A stretch of DNA of 63,766 nt from Pelomyxa schiedti (lineage: Eukaryota; Protista; Evosea). The position numbers and the translations under genes are program-made. A model generated the notes under the pieces. It was not told the origin of the DNA. It saw nothing but the letters and a program-made list of their open reading frames with translations, and searched no databases. Shown piece by piece: positions 11,751 through 54,200 of the stretch (position 1 is its first letter; each line of letters begins with the position of its first letter). The stretch spans positions 1 through 63,766 of the forward strand of contig JAHLWZ010000875.1 of NCBI GenBank assembly GCA_020536535.1, written 5' to 3'.

Positions 11751-13797
11751 ATGAAATCGATACGGGGCACCGGTGGCATTGGTAATGGGCTGGAGACACT
11801 GGATCTACTGCGTCAGGAGTACGAGACGTTGTTGCAAGATCTCAGTTGTTTCAAAGCCCAACGCGATGAACTGGAAAAACAACGTTGTTGCCACAAACAC
11901 AAACACAAAAACAAACACAAAAAAATTTAAAAATAAAATAAGATAATATAAAATATTAAGTGTAACACTCTTTCCAATTCCGCAGTGCAACAACAATCAC
12001 AAGAGTACAGTTCACTACAATCACACATGAAGGCAATAGAAGCTACTCACAATCAGCAACGACTTTTATGGGAAGAAGAAAAAGCCAAATTAAAACGAGC
12101 TGTAGAGCAACACATATACCAGCAAGTGCAACAAATGCAACAGCAACAAACACAACAATCTCGACAAACATTAACTACATCAGGGAGCAATTTCCTCACT
12201 CCCCCATCTCCTTCCTCTGTATCTTCATTGATTCAACCACAACCAGCACAAACACCATCAACTACTGTGAAAACTTCTGCACCCTCGAGTTCTTCCCCTG
12301 ACTGGACCGTAAGGTAGGTCTGCCATACTACCATACTCTTCAATATAATACTGTGAAGCTATAATCAGCCAAATGGGTCTTCAGGAGGACCTCTTCGAGT
12401 GGATTTGTTACACACTTTTAGTCACACAGAGGTTGTATGCTGTGCTGCTCTATCAGATGACGCAAGGTACAGAAACCAAAAACAACTGCATTTCTATACA
12501 CCAATAACTAATGCCAAAAAAAAAAAAAGATTTGTGGCAGCTGGTTCAGGGAGGTCTCTCTACATTTACGATGTGGAGTCTGGCAAACAAGTCCAGTCAG
12601 TTTCCCATTCTCCACAATTGTTTTGTTTACGGACAGCTCATTCACCACAACAGGACGATTACAATTACTGGTGATGATAAGCTCATAGGTTGTAGGACTA
12701 AATACACCTACTCTCTAATCTGGTGTTTAGGTTGTACTAGATCTGTATCATTCAGCCCCTCCGCAACGCACATTGCTGCCGTTTTGGAAGACTATATTGT
12801 TAGAGTTTGGGATTTGTCCAATGTAGGAAATGGTGCATCAAACACTCCTGTCTGCATGTTACAACCACACAATACATACCCCGTTGCATGGTTGCCCAGT
12901 GGTAAAATACTGGCTGCTTGCAACAGAAATGAGCTGAAACTTTGGGAGATTGAAACTCAAAAAGTGCCGCTTTTTCTTATTTGTGATTCGGAATATTAAC
13001 ATTCAATGACAGGTTTCAATGTCTCTATTAGCCAGTGAAACTGCCAATCAATGTACCTCGATTGCTATCGCTCAATCAGGAAATTTAATAGCGGCTGTGT
13101 GATGACCACTAGACATTGCAATTATTGTTAATATCTATCACAGTCATTTGCTGATTCGTCTCCAACCATATGGGATTTAAGGACAGGAAATGTTCTGGAT
13201 ACCCTAGATGGCCACGCAGACTCCGTTTATTGTGTAGCTTTTTCTCATGATGGTATTTTCTCCTTATCTATATAACCACTTATTTGGGAAGGTACCAAGC
13301 TTGCATCTGCAAGCATTGATAAAAATGTGAAATTGTGGGCAGTTCGAATTCCAAATTCTTCCACACCTTCACAGTGTATTGCTACTCTTTCTGGGCACAA
13401 AGTAAAACCCAAATAAATAACCCAACCAACCACTACGAAAGCCCCAGCGTCAAATAGCATTACTATTAAATAAGATGAAAGTGAATGCACTGAACTCCTC
13501 ACAGGATTTCGTACTGACGTGTACATTCATTCATGAAAGTCGATATATTGTTACTGGTGGCAAAGACCGCACGATACAGGTGTGGGATACGCAACAGCCG
13601 GTACCCACACAGGTTCTAACAATTCATGGGCACAGTAACGTCGGTATGCCTCTCGTACCTCCTCCATTTGAACCTCACATTGGATCCCTTCCTCACTGCC
13701 AGTTTTGAGTGTTTCTACCGGCAAGGAAGGAGGTGTTTTTGTTTCTGGAAGTGGTGACTCCAAGGCCAGAGTGTGGAAACTCATTGCAGGATCGTAA
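11751..13797 (+). CDS. tupA: Tup1/TupA-like WD40 transcriptional corepressor
   Basis: Tup_N coiled coil LETLDLLRQEYETL..MKAIEATHNQQRLLWEEEK, a Gln-rich linker, and WD40 repeats HTEVVCCAALS, DFVLTCTF..VTGGKDRTIQVWD and VSGSGDSKARVWK. Confidence 0.85.
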
Positions 13798-13895
13798 TCC
13801 AACAAATACACACAACAATCAAAGAGAATTCCGACAATTTTTTTTTTAAATTCATTCTTAAAACAAACAACAGCTTTACAGTGAAGGTATTTACT

Positions 13896-14777
13896 CTACC
13901 AGTCAGCAGTCCAATTGCCATCGCGCCTTTCAAAGCTATGTACATCGAACTTGACAGCACGGAAGGCGTCTGTAACTCCGACGTCAAGGATGGACGGCCC
14001 TGGGACCTTCTGCCCAAGACTGCAGTCCAGGAACCTCATCCTCTCGTCCAATATGACATAGGAGTTCTGCATGGTGCCGTTGTCTTCCACAATGGGAGCG
14101 ACGCCCGTCACGGAGCCGTCGTCGCCCGGCCTCGGGCTGTTCCTGGCCACAAAGGCCCTAAATTGGTCGTCGGTGATTGCGACGGCGGCGGCGTTGGAGG
14201 CGCATCTCTCGTTCTCCAGGACCAGGACTTTGAAGACCTTCCATCGGCATGGGTTGATCTGTGCAATCTCGTCGGCCATGTTCTCGTCGTGGTTCAGGCT
14301 GCACACGACGGTGTTGAGCTTGACCTTGATGCCAAGTTCTTTGCATATTTGAGCGGCCGCAATCACGCCCTGGCGGTGGTTCCTGGCCCCAGTTGGTGAG
14401 ATTTCGGCGCGGCCAAGTGCCTGGTTGGTTGGATCTCGGAAGGAGTCGATGGACAGGCCAAGAACGTCGACATAGGGGCCATATCTCGCTAGCCATTCGC
14501 GCGTAATCTTGGACCCGTTGGAGATGATAGAAACGGTCATACCAGGCAGGCCGTGTGCGAACTTACACATCGCCCCCAGCTGGTCGGGTCTGAGGAAGGG
14601 CTCGCCGCCTGCAAAATTTATCTTACGCGTGCCGGCGTCGTAGAGCTTTTGAATGCCGCGTTGACATTGGGTCAAAGACAGGGGGCTGGTTGGTTCTCTT
14701 GTGGCTGTGTGGAAGCAGAATATGCATGCATAATTGCAGGCCCTCAGAAAGTGGAAATTTACAGAGGTTAGTTCCAT
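13896..14777 (-). CDS. RSAD2: Viperin (RSAD2-like radical SAM enzyme), intronless, 293 aa
   Basis: SVNFHFLRACNYACIFCFHT (CxxxCxxC), KINFAGGEPF, SIISNGS, LSIDSF, KLNTVV, RWKVF, SYVILDERMRFLDC, SILDVGV, and a C-terminus ending ADW. Confidence 0.96.
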   Translation of the reverse strand: MELTSVNFHFLRACNYACIFCFHTATREPTSPLSLTQCQRGIQKLYDAGTRKINFAGGEPFLRPDQLGAMCKFAHGLPGMTVSIISNGSKITREWLARYGPYVDVLGLSIDSFRDPTNQALGRAEISPTGARNHRQGVIAAAQICKELGIKVKLNTVVCSLNHDENMADEIAQINPCRWKVFKVLVLENERCASNAAAVAITDDQFRAFVARNSPRPGDDGSVTGVAPIVEDNGTMQNSYVILDERMRFLDCSLGQKVPGPSILDVGVTDAFRAVKFDVHSFERRDGNWTADW

Positions 14778-15191
14778 GTCAACTCGCTTTCTTTTTTGTT
14801 TGTTGTGTGGGTTTTTGTTGAATCGAACGTTTTTTTTTTTTTAAAAAAATGTTAGGTCAGTTTGTGGAAGAAATTAAAGAAGACACACAAAAACTTTGCC
14901 GGGCTCTGGAAAACTTGGGTTCTCGGATTGAGTAGACACTACAGTAGACCCATAACTCCGATGAGATCCGCGTTGCTCTCTGCAGTATTTCCAAAGAGCC
15001 TTGTGGGCACACTGCCTCAGTCCGAGTCTAGAATGTATGCATCCGAGTCTCTCATCATCAGGCAGTTATTCCGGAAAAGAAAAGAACTTCGTCTGTTGTC
15101 TTTTCCAAAACGAAGTAAAAGCCCGGTTGCAGGAACCCCGAAAACAATACCAACAAAACAACACAAATCAAAACAAATACGCTACACTAAC

Positions 15192-16478
15192 ATGTCGTCG
15201 TCTTTCGTAGACGACGGCAGTCCCGCGTCTGAAGGCAACATAGACGTAATCACCGAGGGCATCACTCTGTGTTTGTATTTTTGTGTGGGGCTTTTGTGCC
15301 TATGGCGGTTGTTGGTGCACATCACGGTGTCTAAGAGGTGCACAAGGCTCATACAGTTTCACGCGTTTTTGTTGTCTTTCTTCACATGTAAGCCGCTCTC
15401 GTACTTTTGCTGCTGCCCCGTTCGTTTTTCAGATGCATTTTTGGTTCTGTTGTTGTTTTTTTCTTATTGTTTCTTTTCTAGGTGTGGTTTTACATTCTTC
15501 TGTAACCTTGGTGGTAATTGTGGACGGTGGCAAGTACTCAACAACGTTCTTGGAATCACTGGCATATCTTTTGGGAATTGGCTCGCACTCACTGTTTTTC
15601 ACAGCCTTGCTGCTAATATTGATAAACATGTACACCTTTTAAAAATCGGGGAGATGGACTTCATTTTACCTTAGGTTAGAGATTATGTTTGTATCTGTAC
15701 TTGAAAAACAGTTCTTATTCTCTAAGTTTGCCATCATTACATTCTGGATCGTGATGTTCATACCGTATATGTATGATATAGGCACTGCCATCTATTTTGT
15801 AATAGACCCTTCTGCAGACATTGATGGTACCTCAAGACATTCTCCGCTACTATCCCTGTAGCTAATTACTAAATAACTTCAACAGGTAGTCCTCTGTACG
15901 ATACAGCTGTTCTTACTGTTTGCGCTTACGCACTTCTGTGTGGGATTGCGTACTGTATTGCAACAGGTCTTTTCTTTTATCGGCTTTACTCCTTGGAGAA
16001 AAGGAGTCGGACATTATCTAGTATCTTTCAAATTTAACAAACGAAGTCGTATAACAATCCCTTAGTACAAAGCAAGCCATTTTACATTTTGGTGTGTAGG
16101 ATGCTTCAATTTTCTTCCTTATTTTTTCAAAAAGATTGCTGTCATGTGTATATGCTTCACATCCTTCTTTTTGCAGGTTTGTTTGCTCTATTCGTTGTAA
16201 ATAACTTACGCAATTCCAGTTTGCCATGTTTTTATACAGACCGGTTACCGGGAAGTATATGAACGTCTGGGTATTCCAAATCTTCGCCTACTGGGTTCCA
16301 GAGGTATTTTTCCTTTGTTTACACTACTGTGCAGTGTAGTGTGCTTAACGCGTTGTAGATCGGCAGTTCACTGCCACTCCTTGTTGTTGCCCGAATACCA
16401 GACCCTCCACCAAGGCACCCATACACTCCAGTAAATGCCACCATGACTGTACCCTCACAAAGTGAAGGAGACATATGA
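15192..16478 (+). CDS. Multi-pass membrane protein (about 7 TM; THH1/TOM1- or GPCR-like)
   Basis: Successive hydrophobic exons (ITLCLYFCVGLLCLWRLL; FAIITFWIVMF; LTVCAYALLCGIAY; IAVMCICFTSFF; VFQIFAYWVPE) joined by GT-AG introns. Confidence 0.55.
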
Positions 16479-16606
16479 TACATCCATTATCACCATTTTG
16501 TGTACAAGTTTAAAAAAAAAACTCAACTAGAAGAAGCACGGACCAAGCAAAAGTTTTATTTTATACCAAACTCATGTTGGAGCATGGAAAAGAATGAATG
16601 TATAGT

Positions 16607-17028
16607 TTACTTGGACTGGCAGTTAGGTCCCTTCTTTGGGCCACCCTCCACGACTTGAATGAAGCGTCTAGTAGAAAATCATAAGAGCGAGACCATTGAA
16701 AATCAAAAAAAAAAGTGGCGAGTACCTGTTGTAGAGAATGCGCTTGTAGGCGCGTCCCCTTGGCTTCTTGTGCTTCTGGGTCTTGTCGACCTTGGGTGTC
16801 TGTGCCTTGACTTTGCCTGCACGTGCCAAACCACCGTGTACCTTGCCTATTGACACCGAATAAGCGTTTGGACACACGACGCAAAATATTGGGGATTTTT
16901 TTTTATTGGGGTGGGGGTGGACGGAGAGCGGGTGGCAAGTACGTCGTCTCGACGTCTCCTTCCCACTACCGCGGGGAAAAAAACGAATAATATAATGGGG
17001 GCGACAACACAAAACAGAACAAACCCAT
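16607..17028 (-). CDS. RPS30: 40S ribosomal protein S30 (eS30), no ubiquitin-like fusion
   Basis: ATG G|intron|[35 protein letters not shown]|[19 protein letters not shown]. Confidence 0.96.
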
Positions 17029-17348
17029 TGTTGAGAAACGAACGACGAAGAAGAGGCGGTCGGCGACCGACGGCTTGATGTTGAGCTTGGTTTCTTTTTT
17101 TTTGTTTTTTGTTTGTTGTTCCTGCGAAGGAGAGCGACAATAATGAAGTCAATTCTCAATTACGATTTCAGTTGCAGTATCTATTATTCGAATCACTCCC
17201 GACCTGCACTCTGGGAGTTGCTGAAGGATGGAGGCGTTCTCCCCATGTGGGTACTCGTATGCAATTCTGGATAAGAGACGGCTCTTAGGATCCGCAACAC
17301 AAGTTGATGGTTCCTCATTTTCCTGTTCAACTGAAAGAAAACCGTTTC

Positions 17349-20193: not shown

Positions 20194-20830
20194 ATTCTGA
20201 ATACCCACTGATCAAGGGTATTATCATACATGACTCTGGTTCGTGTTGTACACAGCCTCCCCTTCGGCTGCCACCCTGTGCCATCTTGCCACTTCTTATT
20301 GTAGCCCCTAGTAGCGTCACTTTTTCTCGATTCATTGGGACTAGGTGCTTTCTCTCTGAGGTTCGTTCCTTTGCCTCCTGTTCCTTTTTCTCACTGGACA
20401 ACAACAAGATAACTCAATGTTCCCGGACCATAGCTGAGCTCTTGTGCTTAATCTCAGAACAATGTTCTATCAGTACCACGAAGCCACAAGGATCCCAAAC
20501 AGAAAACAGTATCCTCCACATCAACCTTTATTATGGCACTAAGTCAACCTCCCAGGCACTGATGGCACTGTCTCCTTCGCAATTGCAATTGAACAAATGC
20601 AGAGAGAAATTCTATATATGGACTTTTTCTGGACGACAACAGCGTCCCACTGTGCTACGGACCTTTCCATCCTTCTGCGCATTGAATGTGTAGATTGAGC
20701 TTCGTCGAAACTACAATTTTTTCCATCACAGATCTGAATACGGTGTTGTTGCACAATCCTCTTATACTTTTCATACCCCCGGTTGGTAGATGAACGAGGA
20801 AAACTTACGGTACCTCAGAGCAGCTCCCAT
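20150..20830 (-). CDS. Possible small multi-exon gene of unknown function
   Basis: ATGGGAGCTGCTCTGAG|GT followed by several GT-AG-bounded segments. I could not assemble a fully consistent frame. Confidence 0.25.
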
Positions 20831-20978
20831 CCCCTACGTGATAGCAGTAATCAAGATCTTTTTGGTTTTTGCAGAAAGGGAACGAACCCAAGCCAAAAAA
20901 CCACGACGAGCACCAAGAAAAACCAACAATAAACAAAACAAGGGAAAACAAACAAAGCACCCAGAGAAGGAAGGGGAA

Positions 20979-22746
20979 ATGTCATATGGGTCGGTACACG
21001 AGTGGCTGGTGTCGCTGGGCTGCGGGCAGTACAGCGGCACGTTCGCAGACGAGGCCGTCGAGGACATGGACACGGTGCTGCACCTCCGCGAGTCCGACCT
21101 CGAGGCCCTCAGGGTCAAGCGGGGCCACATCGTCAAGATGAGGTCGTCCATCGAGTCCATGCTCCTGGCCCGGCCCCAGTCCTCGTCCTCGTCCTCCTCA
21201 GCCTCGTCCTCTCCCTCCTCCTCCACGTCGTCCTCCTCTTCCTCGTCGTCTTCGTCCTCGGCCTCGCCTCCTCCACCTTCTTCGTCCTTGGCGTCGGTGT
21301 CCGCGGCCGCCTCGTCCTCGGCGTCGATGGCGTTTGGGGCGCCGTTGATGCCCACGGTGGGGCACCACCCACAGCACAAGCCGCCTAATTTGATGGCGGC
21401 AGCCCCGGCGCCGCCGATTATGGGCGCCACACACGCACATTCACAAATGGACGGCGGGGGCAGAGACACTTCGGCTGGCCCGGCTTCCACTAACACTAAT
21501 TCTAGTAATAATAACACCCCAACAACCCCTGTTCAAACAACTACAACCACCACAACACTTACTACTACTGCATCCACTGTAACAACTGTTATGCCAGTAC
21601 TGGGAAGAAGCAGGTCTTCTTCACCTCAGCGGTACCACCTCAGCAGCATCCCATCGGCCAGCCAACAGGCTCCACCGATGCCACTTTCTGCACGACCCCT
21701 GAAACCCCCACTGTTGCTCAATGCTGTTTCAAATTTAACTGGAGGTACAAAGGCATTTCCACTTTTGCTTGTATATTAAATGCCTCATCAGCAGAGCCAT
21801 TGAGTGCGAAGCCTGTGAGTGGAAGGACTAGAGATGACCTTTTTCAATTTTATTTGGAGGCTTCTGCAGGCAATCAAGAATTGGCGTTACGCTTATTCAA
21901 TGAGGACCCTCGAAGTGGATCAGCTTTGAGAAGACCTGAAGGAGATAGAGAAAATCAAAGGTGGCAACAAGAACCCCAGCCCCTTCCTTCCAATATGGGG
22001 GTGAGTCTCATTCATTCCAACATTAATGATTCTGATTTGGTAATTCTAATGTAAATTTCACACTCCTAGGATCTGATTGAGCACCGGCCACACTTACTCA
22101 AAAATCATGTAAAGTGTGTGGTAGTTGGAGATAATAATGTAGGGAAAACAGCCCTTCTCATAACCTACACAACGGATGTGTTTCCAATGGAATACACACC
22201 ATCTGTATGCTCCACCAAATTGCTCATTCACTCTAAGGTGTTTGTAGATATTTACTAACTGGGCGGATACCAAAGTTGTAGATGGAAAAACTGTAATATT
22301 TACCCTATATGACACCTCCGGTCAGGACGATTATGACCGACTGGTATTTCAACAAATTCTGCCCATACCTTTTATTTTCATTCTTATGTGCCATTTAGCG
22401 CCCATGTAGTTATTTCGCCACCGATGTATTCCTTATTCTATTCAGTGTAACAAGTATGCGATCACTCGAGGCCATAACCCGGAAATGGTACCCCGAACTA
22501 GCACACCACTGCCCCTACACACCGTGCATAATTGTGGGAGCCAAAGCAGACCTGCGGGACACAGCCAAGCCAAGCACGCTGGTGCCCCCTGAGGATGCAG
22601 CCTCATGTGCGAGAGCACTGGGTATGAAGTACATGGAATGCAGTGCAATGACTGGCAAGGGACTGCAGGAGGTTTTTGATGAGGCACTCAGGGTTGGGGT
22701 CGAAATACCCCCAATGAGGAAAAAGACCATGTGCAGACTGCAGTAA
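20979..22746 (+). CDS. SAM domain + low-complexity linker + UBA-like domain + atypical Rac/Rho GTPase with CAAX
   Basis: SAM: [28 protein letters not shown]-like ([11 protein letters not shown]). UBA-like: [21 protein letters not shown]. Rac: [19 protein letters not shown]|[16 protein letters not shown]|[15 protein letters not shown], ending CRLQ*. All four introns keep phase. Confidence 0.85.
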
Positions 22747-32190: not shown

Positions 32191-34320
32191 TCAAGGTGAG
32201 CACTGTGGTTGTTCCTCCTCGTCGCAGTCAGCGTCAGCTAGCTTCATCAATCTCGTCACGCAGTATTGCCCGCAGCCGCTGCACAACGACTGCAGTGCAC
32301 CATTCATTGTGCCAAAGTGAAGCGATGAAGGAGGCACCACGCACTCGAAGTCCAGGGCAGAGGAGGTCGCCGTCGCGGACACGAGGAGCCCCAGGGTCGA
32401 GTGGCCCGACTGAATCACGAGGAAGTCGCCGGGGCGCGGGGTTTCTGGTGCCCCGGGTCCGTGGGGGGTGGTGGTGCCTGGACATGGCCACTTGGAGGCG
32501 GAGGCGTGGCGCGAGAACACGCGCATCAGGCTGGATATTATGAGCTCGGGGTCTGTCAACCCTACCGCAAGCCGGAACCAGTGCCCAAGATGGTTCGGTA
32601 TGTTGTCTTTTTGGTTGTTGTTGTGTTGTGTGTTGTGTGTTGTTTTAGGTTGGATTTTTGTTTTGGAGGCATACCGGGTTCTAGAAGTAACCTGCTCAAT
32701 TGTCAAGGCGAAAGCTTAGATTAAGAAATGAAACCTGGAAGGGGAATGGGTTGGCCACTCCAGGAGAGTATGAGCTTCCCCATATGACGTGGCATTGTGC
32801 AGCTTGCCGTTGTCAGTGTCTGTGACAATGTTGCGTGCTCTGTTGCAGCTTACGGGCATGTGAAATGAAAATACTCCTGGATAGAGAGTCCTATTTAACG
32901 CTCAGGATTTGAGTCACATTCTGAAGTCGTATTTTGTTATTTTCGGCGCAAACCTGCCAAAATAGCGCTGATAATTATTGTAAGTGGGATGTGAGAGAAG
33001 AGATGAATGCATGACTCTTGTGACACAGGGAAGACGACACAAAAACTGGGCAATCTTTGTGGCTGACAAGGAGGCTCTTTCTACTCTGAGTGGAAGAGTT
33101 TCAATACCCTTGGCTCAGTCAATCAATATATCAAATAGGTTACAATTTCAAACCTTTGAGATAAGCCACGCATTCATTGGGGATGCACAAGAGCCAAAGC
33201 AAAGTCTGTGCGCACGCAGTTTTGGCACATAACATTCCCTTTTTGATTTTGATACAACAGCAACACCAATAACAGAGTCAGCCTTTCCACTCAGGTACTT
33301 TGTTCCGGACTCCACCACTATATCGGCACCAAATCTAAAGAAATTAGCGCAGAGCATCTGGGAAAACAAAAGTGAGGAAGAGAGCACTGTAGTGGCTGAC
33401 AAATGACTGGAGATAGCCATGTGTTGTCAACAGTAATTACTGCACCTGGGAGCTTAGATTTTATCACCGAGAAAACTGCAAGAAAGTCTGGGACTTTCCC
33501 ATTTGGATTCGAGCATGTTTCTAGGAGAACAACAACACCCTTATCAGATTTTGTAGCGCCCCTCCCACTGATATCTGCCGCCACTTCCATAACGCATTGC
33601 GTAGTGTAATCGAGATTTGTGAAATCCACATACTTCGTATGTATACCTTTCAGCAAGTCACTTTAATAGGAAAAGCGAGCGAGAAGAAAAAGAGAAATCA
33701 TCCATAGAACATCACCCCTCTGGCACACCAGCTAGAACCTGCAGCTGGTCCATGAGCGTGTAGACATCGCAATATATCTCTTCGCTGCACATCACCCATC
33801 CGCCGCACTTACACACCGAGCACACCACCGCGCTCAGAGCAGCCATCCCCGAGGCGAAAGCAACACAGCAGGACATCCCGCCACTCACGAGACAGTCATC
33901 ATCCTCAGTCTCAGCATTTGCCGACGCTGAGTCGCTGCAGCCAACACTCTCAAGTGGGATAGTAGTGCCATTGACTCTTTGATTGGTGCTGTTATTGTCA
34001 TTGCATGTCGGCGACGGCTCGGCTGGTGCAGGCGTTACCGTAACGGCGTCGGTTGGCGGCAAAGCCGACGACGGTTCGAAACCGAAACGAGTTGCGCCGT
34101 GTAGAATAGCCACCTGACGTTCCAGGAGATCAATTGTGGGATTGGAATCGCGAGTGTAGACGTGCCGTTGAATCTGTGCGGCAGATTGGGTGGCCGGCGA
34201 CGACCCCGAGTGGTACTGGAAGGTGGAAGAGAGACTTATGGGCGGTGTCACGGCCCCGTGGTAGCCCAGGCCGTCGCGGGAGGAGACAACCATTGCCCTC
34301 TCAAATTGGCGGCTGTTCAT
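32191..34320 (-). CDS. Cys/Met metabolism PLP-dependent lyase (cystathionine gamma-lyase / methionine gamma-lyase family)
   Basis: VTPPISLSSTF, YTRDSNPT, FASGMAAL, LETCSNP, VDNTWLSP, ESGTKYLSG (PLP Lys) and FRLAVGLTD. Confidence 0.88.
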
Positions 34321-36378: not shown

Positions 36379-37207
36379 ATGATGGCTGAGCTTCAGAAAG
36401 ATCAAAACTTTGGATTCCGAGGTTTTTCCCTTGGCCTCTTTACATCACAACCGTCGGCCCTACCTTTCTTGTGCCCAATATGCAAGTGCGTGGCTGAAAA
36501 TCCAGTAACCCATACTGCAACAACCGAGGTTGTCAGCTCAATGCCATTCTCTGCTCTTACATCCGTCCCATAGAATACCGTTTTCTGCCAAAAGTGCATT
36601 GCCAGCTGGTTGGATCGCTACAAGAGCTGCCCCATGTGCTCAAAGACAGTCTCTTTGGCCGAAATGGGCGCTCTACCCCCATCCGCAATGGCCAACTACT
36701 CCGTGTAAGTCCCTCCCACCTCTCCAACAACAAACAAACAACCAACCAACCAACCAACCAATCAATCAATCAATCAATCAACCAACAAACATAACACACA
36801 ATAGGCTGTGCATGCAGTGCGTGAACAGCTCGTACGGGTGCAAGAACATCACCACCCTCTCGCTACACCAGCAGCACGCGGCGACGTGCCCCTTCCACCC
36901 CGTGCACTGCCCACACCCCAACTGCTGGCGCACCTTCACCCGCAGCACCATCGACGAGCACGCCAGGGCGTGCGCCAACCGGCCCGCCCCCGGCGTCGCC
37001 CACTGCAGCGTCCCCGTGTGCGCCTGGAGGGGCAGGCCCGAGGAGCTCCCCGCCCACCTCAAGGAGTCCCAGGCCGACCACATCACCGCACTCTCCAGCG
37101 TCGTAACGACGCTGATGCGAGATCAGGCCGAGACACAGGCAACTGTTAGAAGTCTGCGTGAGACTGTGGCAGTACTTCTGGCTGCTAACAAGACAAATCG
37201 GCCCTGA
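36379..37207 (+). CDS. RING + TRAF-type zinc-finger protein without a MATH domain
   Basis: RING: CPICK..FCQKCIASWL..CPMC. TRAF fingers: CVNSSYGC..HAATCPFHPVHCPHPNC..HARAC. Then HLKES..HI and a short coiled coil before the stop. Confidence 0.85.
36725..36790. repeat. Intronic (CAAC)n/(CAAT)n microsatellite
   Basis: Tetranucleotide tandem array read directly. Confidence 0.9.
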
Positions 37208-43968: not shown

Positions 43969-44169
43969 TACTTTTGGATCCTTTTTCAAATAAAGTTGGA
44001 ACGTTCCAACGGCACCACTAGGCAATAGATTCTACGGGCACTGCAAACGCAGTCTTTGGCACATAGTTCATCTATCGTGTGCGTGTCGTTGTGGTTTTCG
44101 GAGAATGACCCAACAAGACACCAGTGTGTGTTTGCAGAAGAAAAGCCAAACAGGAAAACAACGAAAAGA

Positions 44170-47100
44170 ATGTGGCTGTTCCAGAAGCAGCCCCAAGACG
44201 TGCTGTTCGAGGCGTCGCGCGACGGCGACTCGGCGACGGTCCTCAAGATCCTCTGCGAGAACAACCTCTCGGCCGACACCACCGGCAGCGCGTCGGGGGG
44301 CGACACGCCGCTGTTCGCGGCGAGCGCCAACGGGCACCCCCGCGTGGTGGAGCTGCTGCTGACCAAGGGGCGCGCGGACCCCGACCGCGCCATCGCCACG
44401 CGCGGCGGCGCCACCCCGCTGTTCGCCGCGTGCGCCAACGGGCACGCCGAGGTCGCCCGCGTGCTGCTGGCCAAGGGCCGCGCGAGGGTCAACAAGCCCA
44501 AGGCGTCGTCCGGCGCGACGCCCCTGCTGGTGGCCGCGCAGAAGGGCCACGCCGCCGTCGTCGAGGTGCTCATCGGCGTCGGCCACGCCGACGTCTCCCT
44601 GGGCATCCGTCCCACCGGCGTCCCCAATTCCCCGTCTTCCCCAGCGCTTTACACTTCGTCGTCATCTGCTGCTTCTTCTAAGAAATCTGGCTCTGGATAT
44701 GGAGCTGGCGTTCAGACGAACGTGAAGGCGGCCGGGGCCACGCCTTTGTTTGTTGCTTCGCAAGGGGGGCACGCTGAGGTTGTAGAGCTGCTGATAAAGG
44801 CCGGCGCCGACGTCGACGCCCCTGGGGCCGGGGCCGACGCCACCTCGTTGTTCGCAGCCAGCGCCGCCGGGCACGCCAATGTGGTTGCGATTCTGATCGA
44901 CCGCGGGCACGCGGACACGAACAAGCCGAGGAAGAGCGACGGCGCGTCTCCGATCTTCGCGGCCTGCGCAAATGGCCATGTGAGTGTAGTGGAACTTTTG
45001 GTGGCGAGGGGCGCGGATCCCAGGAGGCCCTTGCCCAAGCTGAGGCTCACTCCGCTGCACATCGCCGTGATTATGGGTCACGCGCATGTCGTCGCGGCAC
45101 TCCTGAGAGCCGGCGTTGCCGCGGACGGCATGGAGGAAGGAGCCGGCGCCACGGAGTGCAACGACTGCTCCGAATGCGAGCCGCAAGATTACATAGTCGT
45201 CCCGCCGCTGCACATGGCCGCTGCCAGGGGCAACACTGAAATTGTTTCATTGCTGGCCTCTTGTGGTGCCGATTGCGAACGGCCGGTGGGGCTGTGGGGG
45301 ATGACGCCCTTGTGCATCGCCTGTCGCGCGGCGCGGCCTTTGATCGCTCATCTGCTCATTGATGAGGCGTGTGTTGGCGTGGAAACCCCAACTTCTCCAC
45401 GCGATCCAAGCTTTACACCTCGTCCTCCTATTGTCTGCGCGTTAGTGGGGAGAGATCAAGTATGCTTCCCTTCTTCACTTTCCTAACGCGTTAATTCTGA
45501 TCCCGCGCATGTGCCTCTTCTACTGGAAAGATCACTTGCCTCTATGGCCATGAGTTGACCGAAATTTCTACCAAAGAGGAGTTAGAGAAATACAAGGGAG
45601 CACATCATTCATATGTTGTGTGTTCTGCGTGCGGTGGTTGGGTGAATTTACCTCTTCCCGCGTTGGTATGCGATGTATGCAGCTCTTTCTTTTTATGTAC
45701 AGTCTGCTGTGCTGCCTGGAGGGCGCCGCCAGCCCTTCCTTCAGGCTCCCCTCCTGGCTCTCCTACACTCTCACCTTGTATTCCTACATCCACTTCCTCC
45801 TTAGCTCTCCTCCCCTCCCCTCCACAGACAACTCTTCCTTCACCAACCAAAAAATCCTCTTCTACCATAACACCTCCTGAAGCACCTACAACTTCCAAGC
45901 GGTCTCCATCTCCGTCACCTCCTGCAATGGACATAGATACACAAATAGCAGCTTCTACAGCGGCAATGGCCGCCAGTACCAACGCTATTGAGGTAGCCAG
46001 AACTATTGTGATAGCTGGAGCTACAGTACCTGAGGTGTGGAGAAAAGAAGTAAAATCTGCTATCGGAGGCTCTGATTTGATGCATAGCTTACTGGGGCTG
46101 TGGAGAGCCTGTGGGGTTGCAAAAATTTTCTCTCAAGAACCAGAGCAGCAACAAAATGAAGCTCCTCCAAGCACAACAACTACCACTGAGGGACCCGATG
46201 CTCAAGTATCTGTGAAAGCCCCTGAGCTCCCACAAATTGTCAGCAAGTGGGTGTGGTTCGACATGTGCATAGCACAGCCATCACAACTTATCACGAAATT
46301 GTCTCAGCGGGCAGATACCCAAGTTGCAACTGCTCACATTCTAGATGAAGGATGCACTGGATATATACCGTTTGGAAGTAGGTTGTCCTGTTTTATCTAA
46401 AATATACCAAACAAGAGAATAATAAAATATTTACTAAGGTATGAATCAATTATCTGTGAGAATGGTCCTTCACCTCAATCGGGATCTTCAAAAGAAATCC
46501 AAAGAGAAACTCAGTACGATAAACCAAGAGAACCTGTTCAAGCAACGCCTCCAGCAACACAGTAAATTAATGGTGCAGCAATGTGAACTGCAAGAACAAG
46601 AATTGTTTCAGCTCAGAGGAGATCTGATGCGTGTCAGTGGTGAGCTGGTAGATGCACGACGAGAAGCAGCAACTGCCATGCACGATCTAGCAACAACAAT
46701 GGTGGAGCTGGAGTGGCTGAGGAAGCAGATGACTGGAGGAGTTGGTGCTACAGCAGGGTCCACCAGCCCAGCTGTCAAACGAGAAGTTGATGCACAAAGG
46801 GATAAAGGTGACATGGGGAAGCAGTCTGACTTGTCTGTGCACACAAGTACAGATACAATTCCCAAGGTAATTTATGTGGAACCAGATGCTGATACAGGAA
46901 CAACAAAAGGGAAACAGACACTCCCTCAAATAGTCACCCCACCAACAGCCGTTATCGTTGACTCGGCAAGTTTTACTAATGGTCAAGCCCCAACAAAGAC
47001 AACCAGTGGCGATAAGTTTAAAAGCGTTGAAGAAATGCATGAAGAGGGTAAGTCTTTGGGCTCAAGCTATGGGTCAAGTACATCGCCAAATTCTTGTCCT

Positions 47101-51043: not shown

Positions 51044-51214
51044 TTTGCCTTCTATGACAACCCACCCACCCCTCACAAGCTATCCCCACTTTTTGTGTTT
51101 GTTTTTTTGGAGGGCTGAATCAAATCCTCCCCACACCCACTACCACAACATAAATACTTTCCCTTGGATTTGTGATGCTAAATTTTTCTCCAAAAAGTGA
51201 AAAAAAAAAGCGCG

Positions 51215-54200
51215 ATGAGTTACAACGAAGGGTCGCTTTCGTCGTTCTCGGCGTCAAACAAGGACGAGGCCCCCGACTATCACCAAAACACCACGGACCA
51301 ACTTGGTGACGTTCCCGACGACGAACAGTATGACAACAGTGCTGCCTCTCAAGAGAACGACAACGAAAATGAAAACGAAAACCAAAACGACGAGGAAAAG
51401 GAAGACGGCAACCTCGAAACCGCTGTCGAAGGCGACGACAAGTCCCACGACAGTTACGATGACTACGATGATTACGCCGAGTCGCCACCACCAAATGAGC
51501 ACCAACCCCAAGACACAGTAAGCAGCAGCAGCAGCACCCCCGCGGCCACCGCCGCCCCCGCCACGCCGGCCGCCGCGTCCCATGGCAAGTCCGCCGCGGC
51601 CCAGCTGCCCTCCTCCCGCTCCCGCTCGCCGTCGCCTTCCTCCTCGGACGAGCACAGCGGCAGCCCCCGCCACGCACAGCAGCCCCCCACGCAGGCCCCT
51701 GCCTCGCACAACCCCACGCCCACAACCACCCCGCGGCCCCCTGCCACTCCTGCTAGCCCTACTACCACCACCACTACCACTACCACTACCACTGGCAGTA
51801 GTCGTGGGGCAGGCGGCAGCGGCGGCGTCGTTGTTGTAGGATATTCCCGTGCGGCGGCGGCAGCGAGCACGCCGTCTGGGACACCTCACTCGCTGTCTTC
51901 CGGCGGCCGCGTGGGGGCTCCTGCTGCCGCCCAACCCGTCGCCGCCCCTGCTGCCGCTAAACCCGCCGACTCACATGACCACATCACGCCCAAGTCATCC
52001 CCGAGGCCGATAGCCACAGCAACCACAACCACAACCACAACCACAACCAAAACCAAAACCAAAACTCCAACTAGTGGCAGCCCCGCAACCAGCGCCAGAG
52101 GTTCCGTGCACGTGCAACAGCCGCAGCAGCAGCAGACGCAGCCACCACCTCAACAACACCCACAAGTTCAAGGAGGAGGGGATGCGGGGGTTAAAAGTGG
52201 TGCTGGGGAACTGAAGGGAGTGTTGTTTGTGGTACCGAGGGGCAGAGGGGATGGCGACGGGGGCGACGAAGCTGTTGGTGTGAAAGTGCTTCATGCGTAC
52301 CCTCCAGCAATTGGGCTGAATCCAGCTGCACTGCTGGCCGCCAGGTTGGCACTTGGAATGAGAGATAGTTCAATGCAGCTTTCTGGGCAGCCAGTAACTA
52401 GTGATTTTTACCACCTTTTTTTTCCCCCCTTTTCATTTTTGATAACTTATTTTTTTACATTGCTAGATGCAAATTGCGTGCTATGGTGATGCTTGTAATA
52501 CAGTATTCTTTTGCAGCGTTGCCAGAGTTAAGGGTCCTATAACTGCCGTGGCACTGGTTTCATCTGGTGCAGCAACTCCCATGCATATTAGAAGATGGGT
52601 CCCGCATGGACTGCATTCAATTTTGCAAGCAGCAGTCCGGGAACTGAAGTTTTTATTGGAAGATGTTGTAGATATCCTGTCTCACATGACAGACAGCAGT
52701 ACTCCAGGAGGCAATCAAGTTTCACCTCTGGCCTCTTCTTCAAGCCAAATTCATGGGCCTCCACCAAACCAACATGCAGAGGAACATGCGATATTGGAGG
52801 CTCTTCTTTCATCTTTATTGTCATCCATGTCCGAATGTGGTATACATCTCGACGCTGCTCTGCCCTTCCCCTTCACTTTATTACTTCCAAAAAGGTTTTC
52901 CTGGGGAGTCACATGTGAGCAGTCTTGATATATTCACTCAAACTCAGAAGAATGTAAACTCCTAATCACTGAGTATAACTATCCCTTATGCGGGCTTACT
53001 AAAGGGCATCTTATGCATTGACCTTCCGCCACCATTTCAAACAGACCTTGAAACAATATTCACTGAGCTTCTTGGTGCACAACGTCAAAGCGACATGCAA
53101 CTTGGGGTGTCTTCACTCCTAATTTTGATGGAATTCTGATACAAAAAAGGAATTTGCACGCACCAGGTGGCCAGTGGGGTGTTGTTTGCTCGGACCACAG
53201 TGCGTCATTTACTCAACATTTCACCCTTCACTGCTGTTACCAATTGTATGTTGCTGTTACCTACTGGAAAGGGCTAACAATCGAGAGCCTGGTATGTGCC
53301 TTTTTAGTATTAGTCTACACCCAGAGCTCTCTGACAACCTTCAAGAGTCCTCCGAATTTATAACACAATACAAAGTGTTTGCCCCGGCTTGTGTGGGGTC
53401 AGGTCATTACTCCACCTTTTATCCTGGAGTAATACTGTTTCAGAACACCCAAGACGCCAGCAGCATTTCCTATCAATTGTTGCACAAGGACAGTTTACAA
53501 TGTGTTTGCTTTTGCTTCCAACGTCAACTTACCCGGGGTATTTTTTTCCACCTGAACGAAACTGATGTAACATCCCATCAGAGAAGTTGACCCCTATTAC
53601 ACACAGAACATGCAAAGAGCCTTCTCGGAACTTTGGAGAAGTGGCCTTCTTGACAAGTATCATACCATTTTTGTCCTTGGCAATCACTCAATTTCCTCAG
53701 GATACAACCTTTTCTGAGCCCTCCCGAGGTACTCTATCCTCCAAACGAGAAACACCCTTTCATGTTAGTCTACCACCAATCAATCCAACTGTGAATTACT
53801 ATTGTGTAGGCTTTGCCTCAATAAAGATGTGGCCATAGCACATTACATGCTCTGCAGCAGCTTTTCTGGACTTATTTTATGTCCACCGCAGACCCTGCTA
53901 TGCAGTGGCGGCAAGAACCTACCTAACATTCAGATGCAGAAACCTCACCACCTCACCCACAAATTCAGTTCCAAATGTTTTCAATTATGCTGTCATATCT
54001 CGTCGGTTCTAAGGAAATTTGCACCTGAGCCGAGAGAACAAAAGGTACCTAAGCTGGAAATGGAGGAAGCAATTACCCCAATTAGGCCAGGGCAATACCA
54101 GGTAAAAAAAAAAATATCGGCCATACCCTATGGCATTATGTTATATAACTCAGTTAGGTAAAAGAAGATTTGTTTCCCGAGGCCCGTCGACAGTACAAGT

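Follow-up and report, generated by a model that had tools for sequence, protein, structure and literature searches.

The viperin locus of Pelomyxa schiedti

The window, by which we mean the whole 63,766-nucleotide stretch of DNA from the anaerobic amoeba Pelomyxa schiedti that was analysed, carries on its reverse strand a complete ORF at 13896 to 14777 that runs from ATG to stop (13896 to 13898) in 293 codons plus stop and a single exon, exactly as the first-pass annotation had described it. The ORF list, the profile NF038283, matches to solved structures and an AlphaFold2 model searched with Foldseek agree in making this the coding sequence of a viperin. Viperins are radical SAM enzymes. With the help of a [4Fe-4S] cluster and S-adenosylmethionine they turn a ribonucleoside triphosphate, by removal of water, into its 3'-deoxy-3',4'-didehydro (ddh) analogue, a terminator of viral RNA synthesis. 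Because the 21 codons upstream are open and include no start codon, M1 is the likely start; homology to solved viperins begins at residue 4 and continues without a break to residue 289.

Against the NCBIfam viperin model NF038283 (viperin_w_prok, cut-off 180 bits) the protein scored 248.2 bits (E 8e-74) over model positions 3 to 280 of 281, whereas the best non-viperin model, MoaA (TIGR02666), gave 57.9 bits against a cut-off of 284. The narrower animal-type viperin model TIGR04278 gave 244.9 bits, under its cut-off of 450, and Pfam returned the general Radical_SAM domain only. By sequence, viperins and viperin-like enzymes took all nine top places in the PDB, with E values from 3e-60 to 2e-54 and alignments that cover residues 4 to 289. 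An AlphaFold2 model built from a 72-sequence alignment had a mean pLDDT of 93.1 and a pTM of 0.91, and its 30 best Foldseek matches in the PDB were all viperins (TM 0.75 to 0.89, reaching 0.88 to 0.89 for 9dfw, 6q2p and 7n7h), followed by MoaA at TM 0.68 (E 1e-10). The model contains the partial (beta-alpha)6 barrel closed by a C-terminal extension. On both the profile scores and the fold we rejected membership of the MoaA family, the check that had been proposed for the viperin assignment.

The motifs listed in the first-pass annotation were all found in the translation (CNYACIFC, SVNFH, KINF, KLN, RWK, SY, LDC, GQK, RR and the WTADW ending), as was KVLVLENERC after RWKVF. The radical SAM cluster motif CNYACIFC (14715 to 14738, reverse strand) supplies C14, C18 and C21 of the CxxxCxxC signature, which, like the SAM motif GGE (G57-G58-E59), is invariant in 72 aligned viperins; N7, N87, K153, N155, R178, K180, Y240 and R285 are invariant in the same alignment. 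The nucleotide-binding residues of mouse viperin (6Q2P) we take to be N77, H79, K120, N122, K220, N222, R245, K247, an S-Y pair and R347, and the predicted equivalents N7, H9, K52, N54, K153, N155, R178, K180, S239, Y240 and R285 are all kept. By alignment, every family-invariant ligand of substrate and SAM is present. The ORF encodes a complete viperin that is apparently functional.

The gene lies between two spliced genes on the forward strand, a WD40 gene at 12595 to 13803 with seven GT..AG introns of 39 to 103 nt and a gene at 15629 to 16481 with six short GT..AG introns, both defined by RNA contigs. A DNA run of the same study, as assembled by Logan, covers 11960 to 16999 unbroken, so that the viperin gene is not joined to its neighbours by misassembly. 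The absence of introns had been put forward as a peculiarity of the locus. That absence agrees with the uninterrupted homology and stands out beside the spliced neighbours, but many more uninterrupted ORFs of 200 to 476 aa lie in the window, several of them with eukaryotic domains (SAM, ankyrin, SH3 and E2), and a single-exon viperin gene is therefore not exceptional here. Three RNA-like runs, two of single-cell RNA and one with spliced contigs, contained no contig over 13892 to 14700 though both neighbours were covered, a gap in contigs that cannot prove silence, and the unspliced state of the gene is argued from homology. In line with the description of a stand-alone enzyme, the genome holds one copy of the gene and no CMPK2-type nucleotide kinase adjoins it, in which it differs from the mouse and human gene RSAD2; the sole Thymidylate_kin match is on another contig. 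In the diatom Seminavis, a thymidylate-kinase-type gene adjoins viperin.

The P. schiedti gene is already in GenBank as an 'IFN-inducible and antiviral protein' of 275 aa, the sole difference from the 293-aa ORF being an 18-residue gap at residues 79 to 96. These residues, which include strand 3 and S86-N87-G88, are encoded by a 54-nt GT..AG stretch at 14489 to 14542 (reverse strand) that the deposited model cuts out. We judge this intron to be a probable prediction artefact, and the gene to be single-exon, because the stretch encodes V-S-I-I-S-N-G-S, with Asn87 invariant in every viperin compared, because the strand that it contributes (E81-86) is modelled at pLDDT 97 to 98, and because its GC content of 0.50 is unlike that of RNA-confirmed introns nearby (mostly 0.29 to 0.43). 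The deposited model thus appears to drop a conserved strand, for which a correction is due, and the case raises the suspicion that short in-frame introns were called too often when this genome was annotated automatically.

Phylogenetic placement and origin

A phylogeny of 101 sequences, 49 of them eukaryote-like rows including the query and 52 prokaryotic, was inferred with IQ-TREE under LG+C20+F+G4 by PMSF. The query fell within the 49-row eukaryote-like clade (UFBoot/aLRT 100/100), and there within a nested clade of 46 rows (98/91); the 52 prokaryotic rows all lay outside the larger clade. The P. schiedti viperin is therefore a member of the main eukaryotic viperin clade, from a family known from every eukaryotic supergroup and already possessed by the last eukaryotic common ancestor (PMC10732462). 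Inside that clade its position is poorly supported: its nearest neighbours are two environmental sequences, at just 91/67, it does not group with the named Amoebozoa, and its terminal branch is long (0.91 versus a median of 0.57). The sister support and the branch length weaken the case for vertical descent from an amoebozoan ancestor. The nearest non-self proteins are 49 to 53% identical to the query, the named sources among the nearest relatives being diatoms, a blastocladiomycete, red algae, choanoflagellates, animals and fungi; identity is 29 to 40% for the 80 best prokaryotic loci and 34 to 36% for viperins from giant-virus metagenomes.

A second Pelomyxa carries what is likely an orthologue. 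The viperin of Pelomyxa sp. JSP (EukProt EP01106_P017052), known from a transcriptome only, was placed in the eukaryotic clade with an unstable position by Culbertson and Levin 2023 (PMC10732462); a word search with residues 172 to 268 did not recover it from the protein collection searched. It is absent from our 101-sequence tree and was compared by eye from the printed supplement. By this comparison the two proteins have in common RACNY, a longer linker after FCFH, R-W-K-x-x-K, a G/N-E-R in place of G-E-N, K183, R191, a short loop after strand 6, D-C-S-x-G-x-K-V-P-G-P and the R-R-x-G-x-W clamp. The JSP protein differs in having an N-terminal extension of about 33 aa, in lacking the second of the two inserts described below and in not ending in Trp. 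Because both species carry the same lineage-specific residues, the gene is older than their split and goes back to an ancestor shared by at least these two Pelomyxa species.

We hold it to be probable, with some reservations, that the ORF is a native, single-copy viperin gene of P. schiedti from the main eukaryotic clade, encoding a minimal one-exon version of the enzyme whose predicted product is most likely ddhCTP. The first-pass annotation had instead raised the possibility of horizontal acquisition or retroposition. Acquisition from outside is at odds with the 100/100 support for the eukaryotic clade, with a Cys/Lys base-selecting pair that 91 of 117 eukaryote-like relatives share and that all of the 80 best prokaryotic sequences lack, and with the orthologue in a second Pelomyxa. 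Transfer into the Pelomyxa lineage from a virus or a different eukaryote, or an old retroposition in which the copy took the place of a parent gene with introns, would explain both the single exon and the high GC3, and we regard such an origin as unlikely though deserving of consideration. In its favour, the 882-nt single exon lies among genes with introns about every 100 to 200 nt, in a genome with 7.43 introns per gene (PMC8887013); the GC3 of the coding sequence is 0.69, against an overall GC of 0.43 in the RNA-confirmed exons of the neighbours; an A10 run lies about 51 nt beyond the stop codon; and the weak placement away from named Amoebozoa is echoed by the instability of JSP in published trees. 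Against it, intron-free viperin genes are common elsewhere in eukaryotes, as in Seminavis and on two environmental contigs, although those of Paraphysoderma and Capsaspora contain introns. The composition is not foreign to the contig, since the SAM-domain and ankyrin ORFs of native type in the same window share its GC3 range (0.62 and 0.75, respectively), and we rejected composition as a sign of transfer because these long ORFs are equally GC-rich. Around the gene we found no clean target-site duplication, only low-complexity, CA-rich flanking repeats that are imperfect and were rejected as retrocopy evidence, and no second copy is present. With the nearest non-self proteins and the giant-virus copies at the identities given above, no donor is in sight, and a giant virus was rejected as donor on its low identity. 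Any such event would in addition have to be older than the split of the two Pelomyxa species. As a native gene, the P. schiedti viperin is an ordinary member of the eukaryotic family, already annotated, pared down to a minimal architecture and bearing a small number of substitutions specific to its lineage; its discovery value is small, given that a Pelomyxa viperin is already in the PMC10732462 data set and the P. schiedti gene is named in GenBank.

Nucleotide selectivity and variant residues

Base selection by viperins has been assigned to the beta-8 loop by Shomar et al. (preprint 10.1101/2023.09.13.557418), who report that Cys314 and Lys319 of the mouse enzyme confer CTP selectivity, that an Arg in the loop of some fungal viperins confers UTP selectivity, that most prokaryotic viperins have a promiscuous pocket, recognised by an Asn where the mouse enzyme has the Cys, and that two mutations turn a promiscuous viperin CTP-selective. 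In P. schiedti the loop reads CSLGQK (14007 to 14024, reverse strand), and in an ungapped alignment to 6q2p (mouse numbering being the 6q2p chain index plus 44) its C252 and K257 coincide with the published CTP-selecting pair. We predict ddhCTP because this base-selecting pair is kept. The first-pass annotation had suggested a different NTP specificity from the loop that follows RWKVF; the published selectivity residues sit elsewhere, in the beta-8 loop, and are retained, so that the suggestion is not supported.

The loop that had drawn attention is nevertheless unusual. At the end of strand 6 and in the loop beyond it (KVLVLENER, K183 to R191; 14205 to 14231, reverse strand), column counts show that K183 replaces a Gln kept in 115 of 117 eukaryote-like and 65 of the 80 best prokaryotic viperins, and that R191 replaces an Asn kept in all 117 of the former and 71 of the latter; the loop is shortened to 12 aa, from a median of 16. 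Both substitutions are rare and, as the same Lys and Arg are found in JSP, common to the two Pelomyxa species. The variant loop is thus real, but it is not a published specificity element. This region presumably contacts the adenine of SAM more probably than the nucleobase. For the corresponding mouse residues, Q250 and N258, we found no open paper on their role, and the accessible literature does not link positions 183 and 191 to the nucleobase.

Both inserts that had been described were confirmed. Insert 1 (AEISPTGA; 14385 to 14408, reverse strand) belongs to a surface loop after a conserved G-R that varies in length across the alignments and is modelled at pLDDT 78; the region R123 to H133 is 11 aa long, where the median for eukaryotes is 8, and a loop of at least this length occurs in 19 of 117 eukaryote-like relatives. 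Insert 2 (SPRPGDDGSVTGVA; 14097 to 14138, reverse strand) precedes the conserved E-D-N...M-x-x-S-Y and, from the alignment and the comparison with JSP, appears specific to P. schiedti. Its region, R212 to E231, is 20 aa long against a eukaryote median of 11, a length equalled in only 3 of 117 relatives, and AlphaFold2 models it as a small hairpin (pLDDT about 91).

The C-terminus reads RDGNWTADW (13899 to 13925, reverse strand) and, from the translation and column counts, contains the clamp as R285-x-x-x-W289, with Trp289 in place of the usual Tyr, and ends in Asp292-Trp293. A 2026 preprint (10.64898/2026.09.10.750538) claims that the RxxxY clamp is essential and that the disordered C-terminal tail outweighs the pocket in deciding which substrate is used; it reports that a fungal viperin shortened to end at its inner Trp yielded ddhUTP alone, with most of its activity in cells gone. 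In P. schiedti the tail beyond the clamp residue is just 4 aa, and its last three residues are modelled at pLDDT 57.

If the ddhCTP reading is right, the cluster held by C14, C18 and C21 would, with SAM, dehydrate a ribonucleoside triphosphate to its ddh analogue, most likely ddhCTP by way of the Cys/Lys pocket, and this product would terminate viral RNA synthesis. The enzyme would do so in a minimal form, with the N-terminal tail absent and the C-terminus about 9 residues short of animal and fungal ends. What the enzyme makes, that it acts against viruses and that the cytosolic Fe-S machinery matures it are what we infer for the protein. The two loop substitutions and the clamp Trp might alter activity or specificity, and these, together with the preprint's argument on a tail that is nearly absent here, weigh against an ordinary ddhCTP enzyme.

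Taken further, Q183K, N191R, the clamp change and the near absence of a C-terminal tail could together mean a changed substrate range or chemistry, which we consider quite unlikely. Such a change would fit the near-invariance of Gln183 and Asn191 among eukaryote-like relatives and the behaviour of the truncated fungal enzyme, and the persistence of both substitutions in the divergent congener JSP suggests selection for the variant state. The selectivity residues proven by experiment (mouse C314 and K319) are kept, however, as are all family-invariant ligand-binding residues, the clamp Tyr is already F or W in 30 of 117 eukaryote-like relatives, and the silence of the accessible literature on a link from positions 183 and 191 to the base likewise counts against it. 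Whether read as a ddhCTP enzyme or otherwise, a viperin that has no N-terminal tail and hardly any C-terminal one, and that combines the Cys/Lys pocket with changes at two near-invariant positions, is a natural test case for current claims about substrate choice.

Mouse and human viperin (RSAD2; 6Q2P, 5VSL) agree with the P. schiedti model in fold (TM 0.88 to 0.89, rmsd 2.2 to 2.3 A, E 4e-60), in the CxxxCxxC and GGE motifs, in the ligands for triphosphate and ribose and in the CTP-selecting Cys/Lys pair of beta-8. In contrast, the Pelomyxa protein lacks an amphipathic or membrane tail at its N-terminus, stops about 9 residues sooner, in A-D-W and without the L-D-W tail, has Trp for Tyr in the clamp, carries Q183K and N191R, has a strand-6 loop 4 residues shorter and contains the two inserts. 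The best structural and sequence matches are the viperin-like enzymes of Trichoderma virens (7N7I, 9DFW and 9DGW), with 9dfw at E 2.9e-60, TM 0.88 to 0.89 and 40% identity; these enzymes carry the beta-8 Arg and prefer UTP, whereas Pelomyxa has Cys/Lys instead.

Termini and cluster maturation

The terminal Trp had been read as coupling the enzyme to the cytosolic Fe-S assembly (CIA) targeting complex, as in the human protein. According to Marquez et al., the CIA signal is [LIM]-[DES]-[WF]-COOH, the terminal aromatic residue and its position being most critical, and shortening a client tail to a single Trp abolishes binding. The D292-W293 end agrees with the [DES]-[WF] part of this motif, but the antepenultimate Ala291 is not L, I or M, and a tail of 4 aa falls short of the length that such binding calls for. 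In the multiple alignment W293 occupies the conserved core Trp column (R-G-G-x-Y-x-W), two residues farther from the clamp position, a column that holds Trp in 99 of 117 eukaryote-like and 58 of the 80 best prokaryotic viperins; animal and fungal viperins have their terminal Trp (L-[DEQ]-W) in another column, a median of 10 residues further on, so that W293 stops about nine residues short of it. Nor is a terminal Trp confined to CIA-matured homologues or kept in close relatives, since 13 of the 80 best prokaryotic viperins end in Trp at the core position (YEW, YDW, YSW or YPW) and the JSP protein does not. The hosts of such prokaryotic viperins have no CIA system. Of the proposed coupling, then, the D-W end is present, but it falls in the core column instead of an LDW tail, and as evidence for CIA coupling the terminal Trp appears weak. 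More generally, a Trp end alone is no sign of CIA targeting in a viperin, since many prokaryotic viperins stop at the core Trp.

Maturation by the CIA pathway is likely all the same because the P. schiedti viperin is a cytosolic eukaryotic Fe-S protein, and the terminal Trp adds little to this. Profile matches in the P. schiedti genome include MMS19_N (118.6 bits, contig C564) and a DUF59/Cia2-type domain (35.4 bits, contig C466); in Archamoebae a NIF-type system lies upstream. A bolder interpretation, which we think improbable, is that the D-W end at the core Trp acts as a minimal CIA signal, either newly invented or retained from an archaeal-type Y-[DE]-W, while the genus-specific Q183K and N191R beside strand 6 and the missing tail reshape the handling of SAM or nucleotide. 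Were the ending a retained Y-[DE]-W, this would suggest that the client terminus existed before the CIA complex took it over.

At the other end of the protein, there is no trace of the variable N-terminal tail that 83% of eukaryotic viperins are reported to have, as is also the case in 10 of 117 eukaryote-like relatives, and 53 of the 80 best prokaryotic viperins likewise have no more than 10 residues before the core. A recent acquisition from a bacterium or archaeon (for example, a Pelomyxa endosymbiont), or a contaminant contig, would account for this missing tail, for the end near the core Trp and for the lack of introns, but is scarcely credible given the 100/100 branch that parts the protein from all 52 prokaryotic sequences, a best prokaryotic identity of 34 to 40% against 49 to 53% for eukaryotes, a Cys/Lys pocket foreign to the 80 best prokaryotic sequences, the orthologue in a second Pelomyxa, a GC3 common to native ORFs and the position of the gene on a 63.8-kb contig, flanked on either side by a spliced eukaryotic gene and with its junctions spanned by an independent assembly, and we rejected transfer from a prokaryote.

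The likeness of the native Pelomyxa enzyme to prokaryotic viperins (pVips, including those of Asgard archaea) lies instead in its architecture: they are of similar length, have no N-terminal tail and in many cases also stop at or just past the core R-G-G-x-Y-x-W. They differ from it in sequence, at about 29 to 40% identity and with the 100/100 branch between them, and in the base pocket, where pVips have Asn (or Asp) with Tyr, His or Leu, the type reported to be promiscuous, and Pelomyxa has Cys and Lys.

False intron and apparent compositional classes

The 54 nt that the GenBank model of the Pelomyxa schiedti viperin gene excises as an intron (14489-14542, minus strand) are in frame, GC-rich and conserved as coding sequence. 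Were such calls frequent in the annotation pipeline, they would bear on the published figure of 7.43 introns per gene as well as on many protein models of P. schiedti. Long uninterrupted ORFs in the window (20790-21779, 33712-34320, 36530-37207, 44056-45486 and 51197-52489) tend towards high GC, with GC3 of 0.60-0.75. In the intron-rich neighbours, the short exons confirmed by RNA have only 43% GC overall, so that this one contig looks to carry two gene classes by composition.

Viperin homologues in prokaryotes, giant viruses and a diatom

Many archaeal and some bacterial viperins terminate in Y-[DES]-W, exactly at the conserved core Trp (L006, L021, L033, L041, L044, L058, L061, L063, L067, L069 and L073, among other homologue loci), an ending that resembles the eukaryotic targeting tripeptide for cytosolic Fe-S assembly (CIA) at its last two positions. 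The archaea and bacteria with such viperins are not known to have CIA machinery. Five metagenome contigs from IMG/VR giant-virus MAGs (L091-L095) also encode full-length viperin homologues, which share 34-36% identity with the protein of Pelomyxa. In the diatom Seminavis robusta, the viperin gene (501-2107 of locus L089) is without introns, and 177 nt away there is a convergent gene for an 821-aa protein that contains a Thymidylate_kin domain. The pair exemplifies the viperin-kinase linkage that Shomar et al. describe (10.1101/2023.09.13.557418), whereas no such linkage is present in Pelomyxa.

Apparent antisense gene overlap at the viperin start

An assembled RNA contig (window 14711-14945, plus strand) links approximately 14711-14766 with 14856-14945 across a GT..AG intron at 14767-14855, within which the ATG of the minus-strand viperin gene falls. 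The divergent plus-strand gene, which includes a membrane-protein-like ORF (14862-15674) and has exons to approximately 16481, therefore seems to start within roughly the first 22 viperin codons, antisense to viperin. Such an overlap could mean that the two genes interfere in transcription or that they share a promoter region. Further along, a ribosomal protein S30 gene of the ubiquitin-like fusion type (16553-17159, minus strand) has the deepest RNA contigs of the stretch and a confirmed 58-nt intron (16668-16725).
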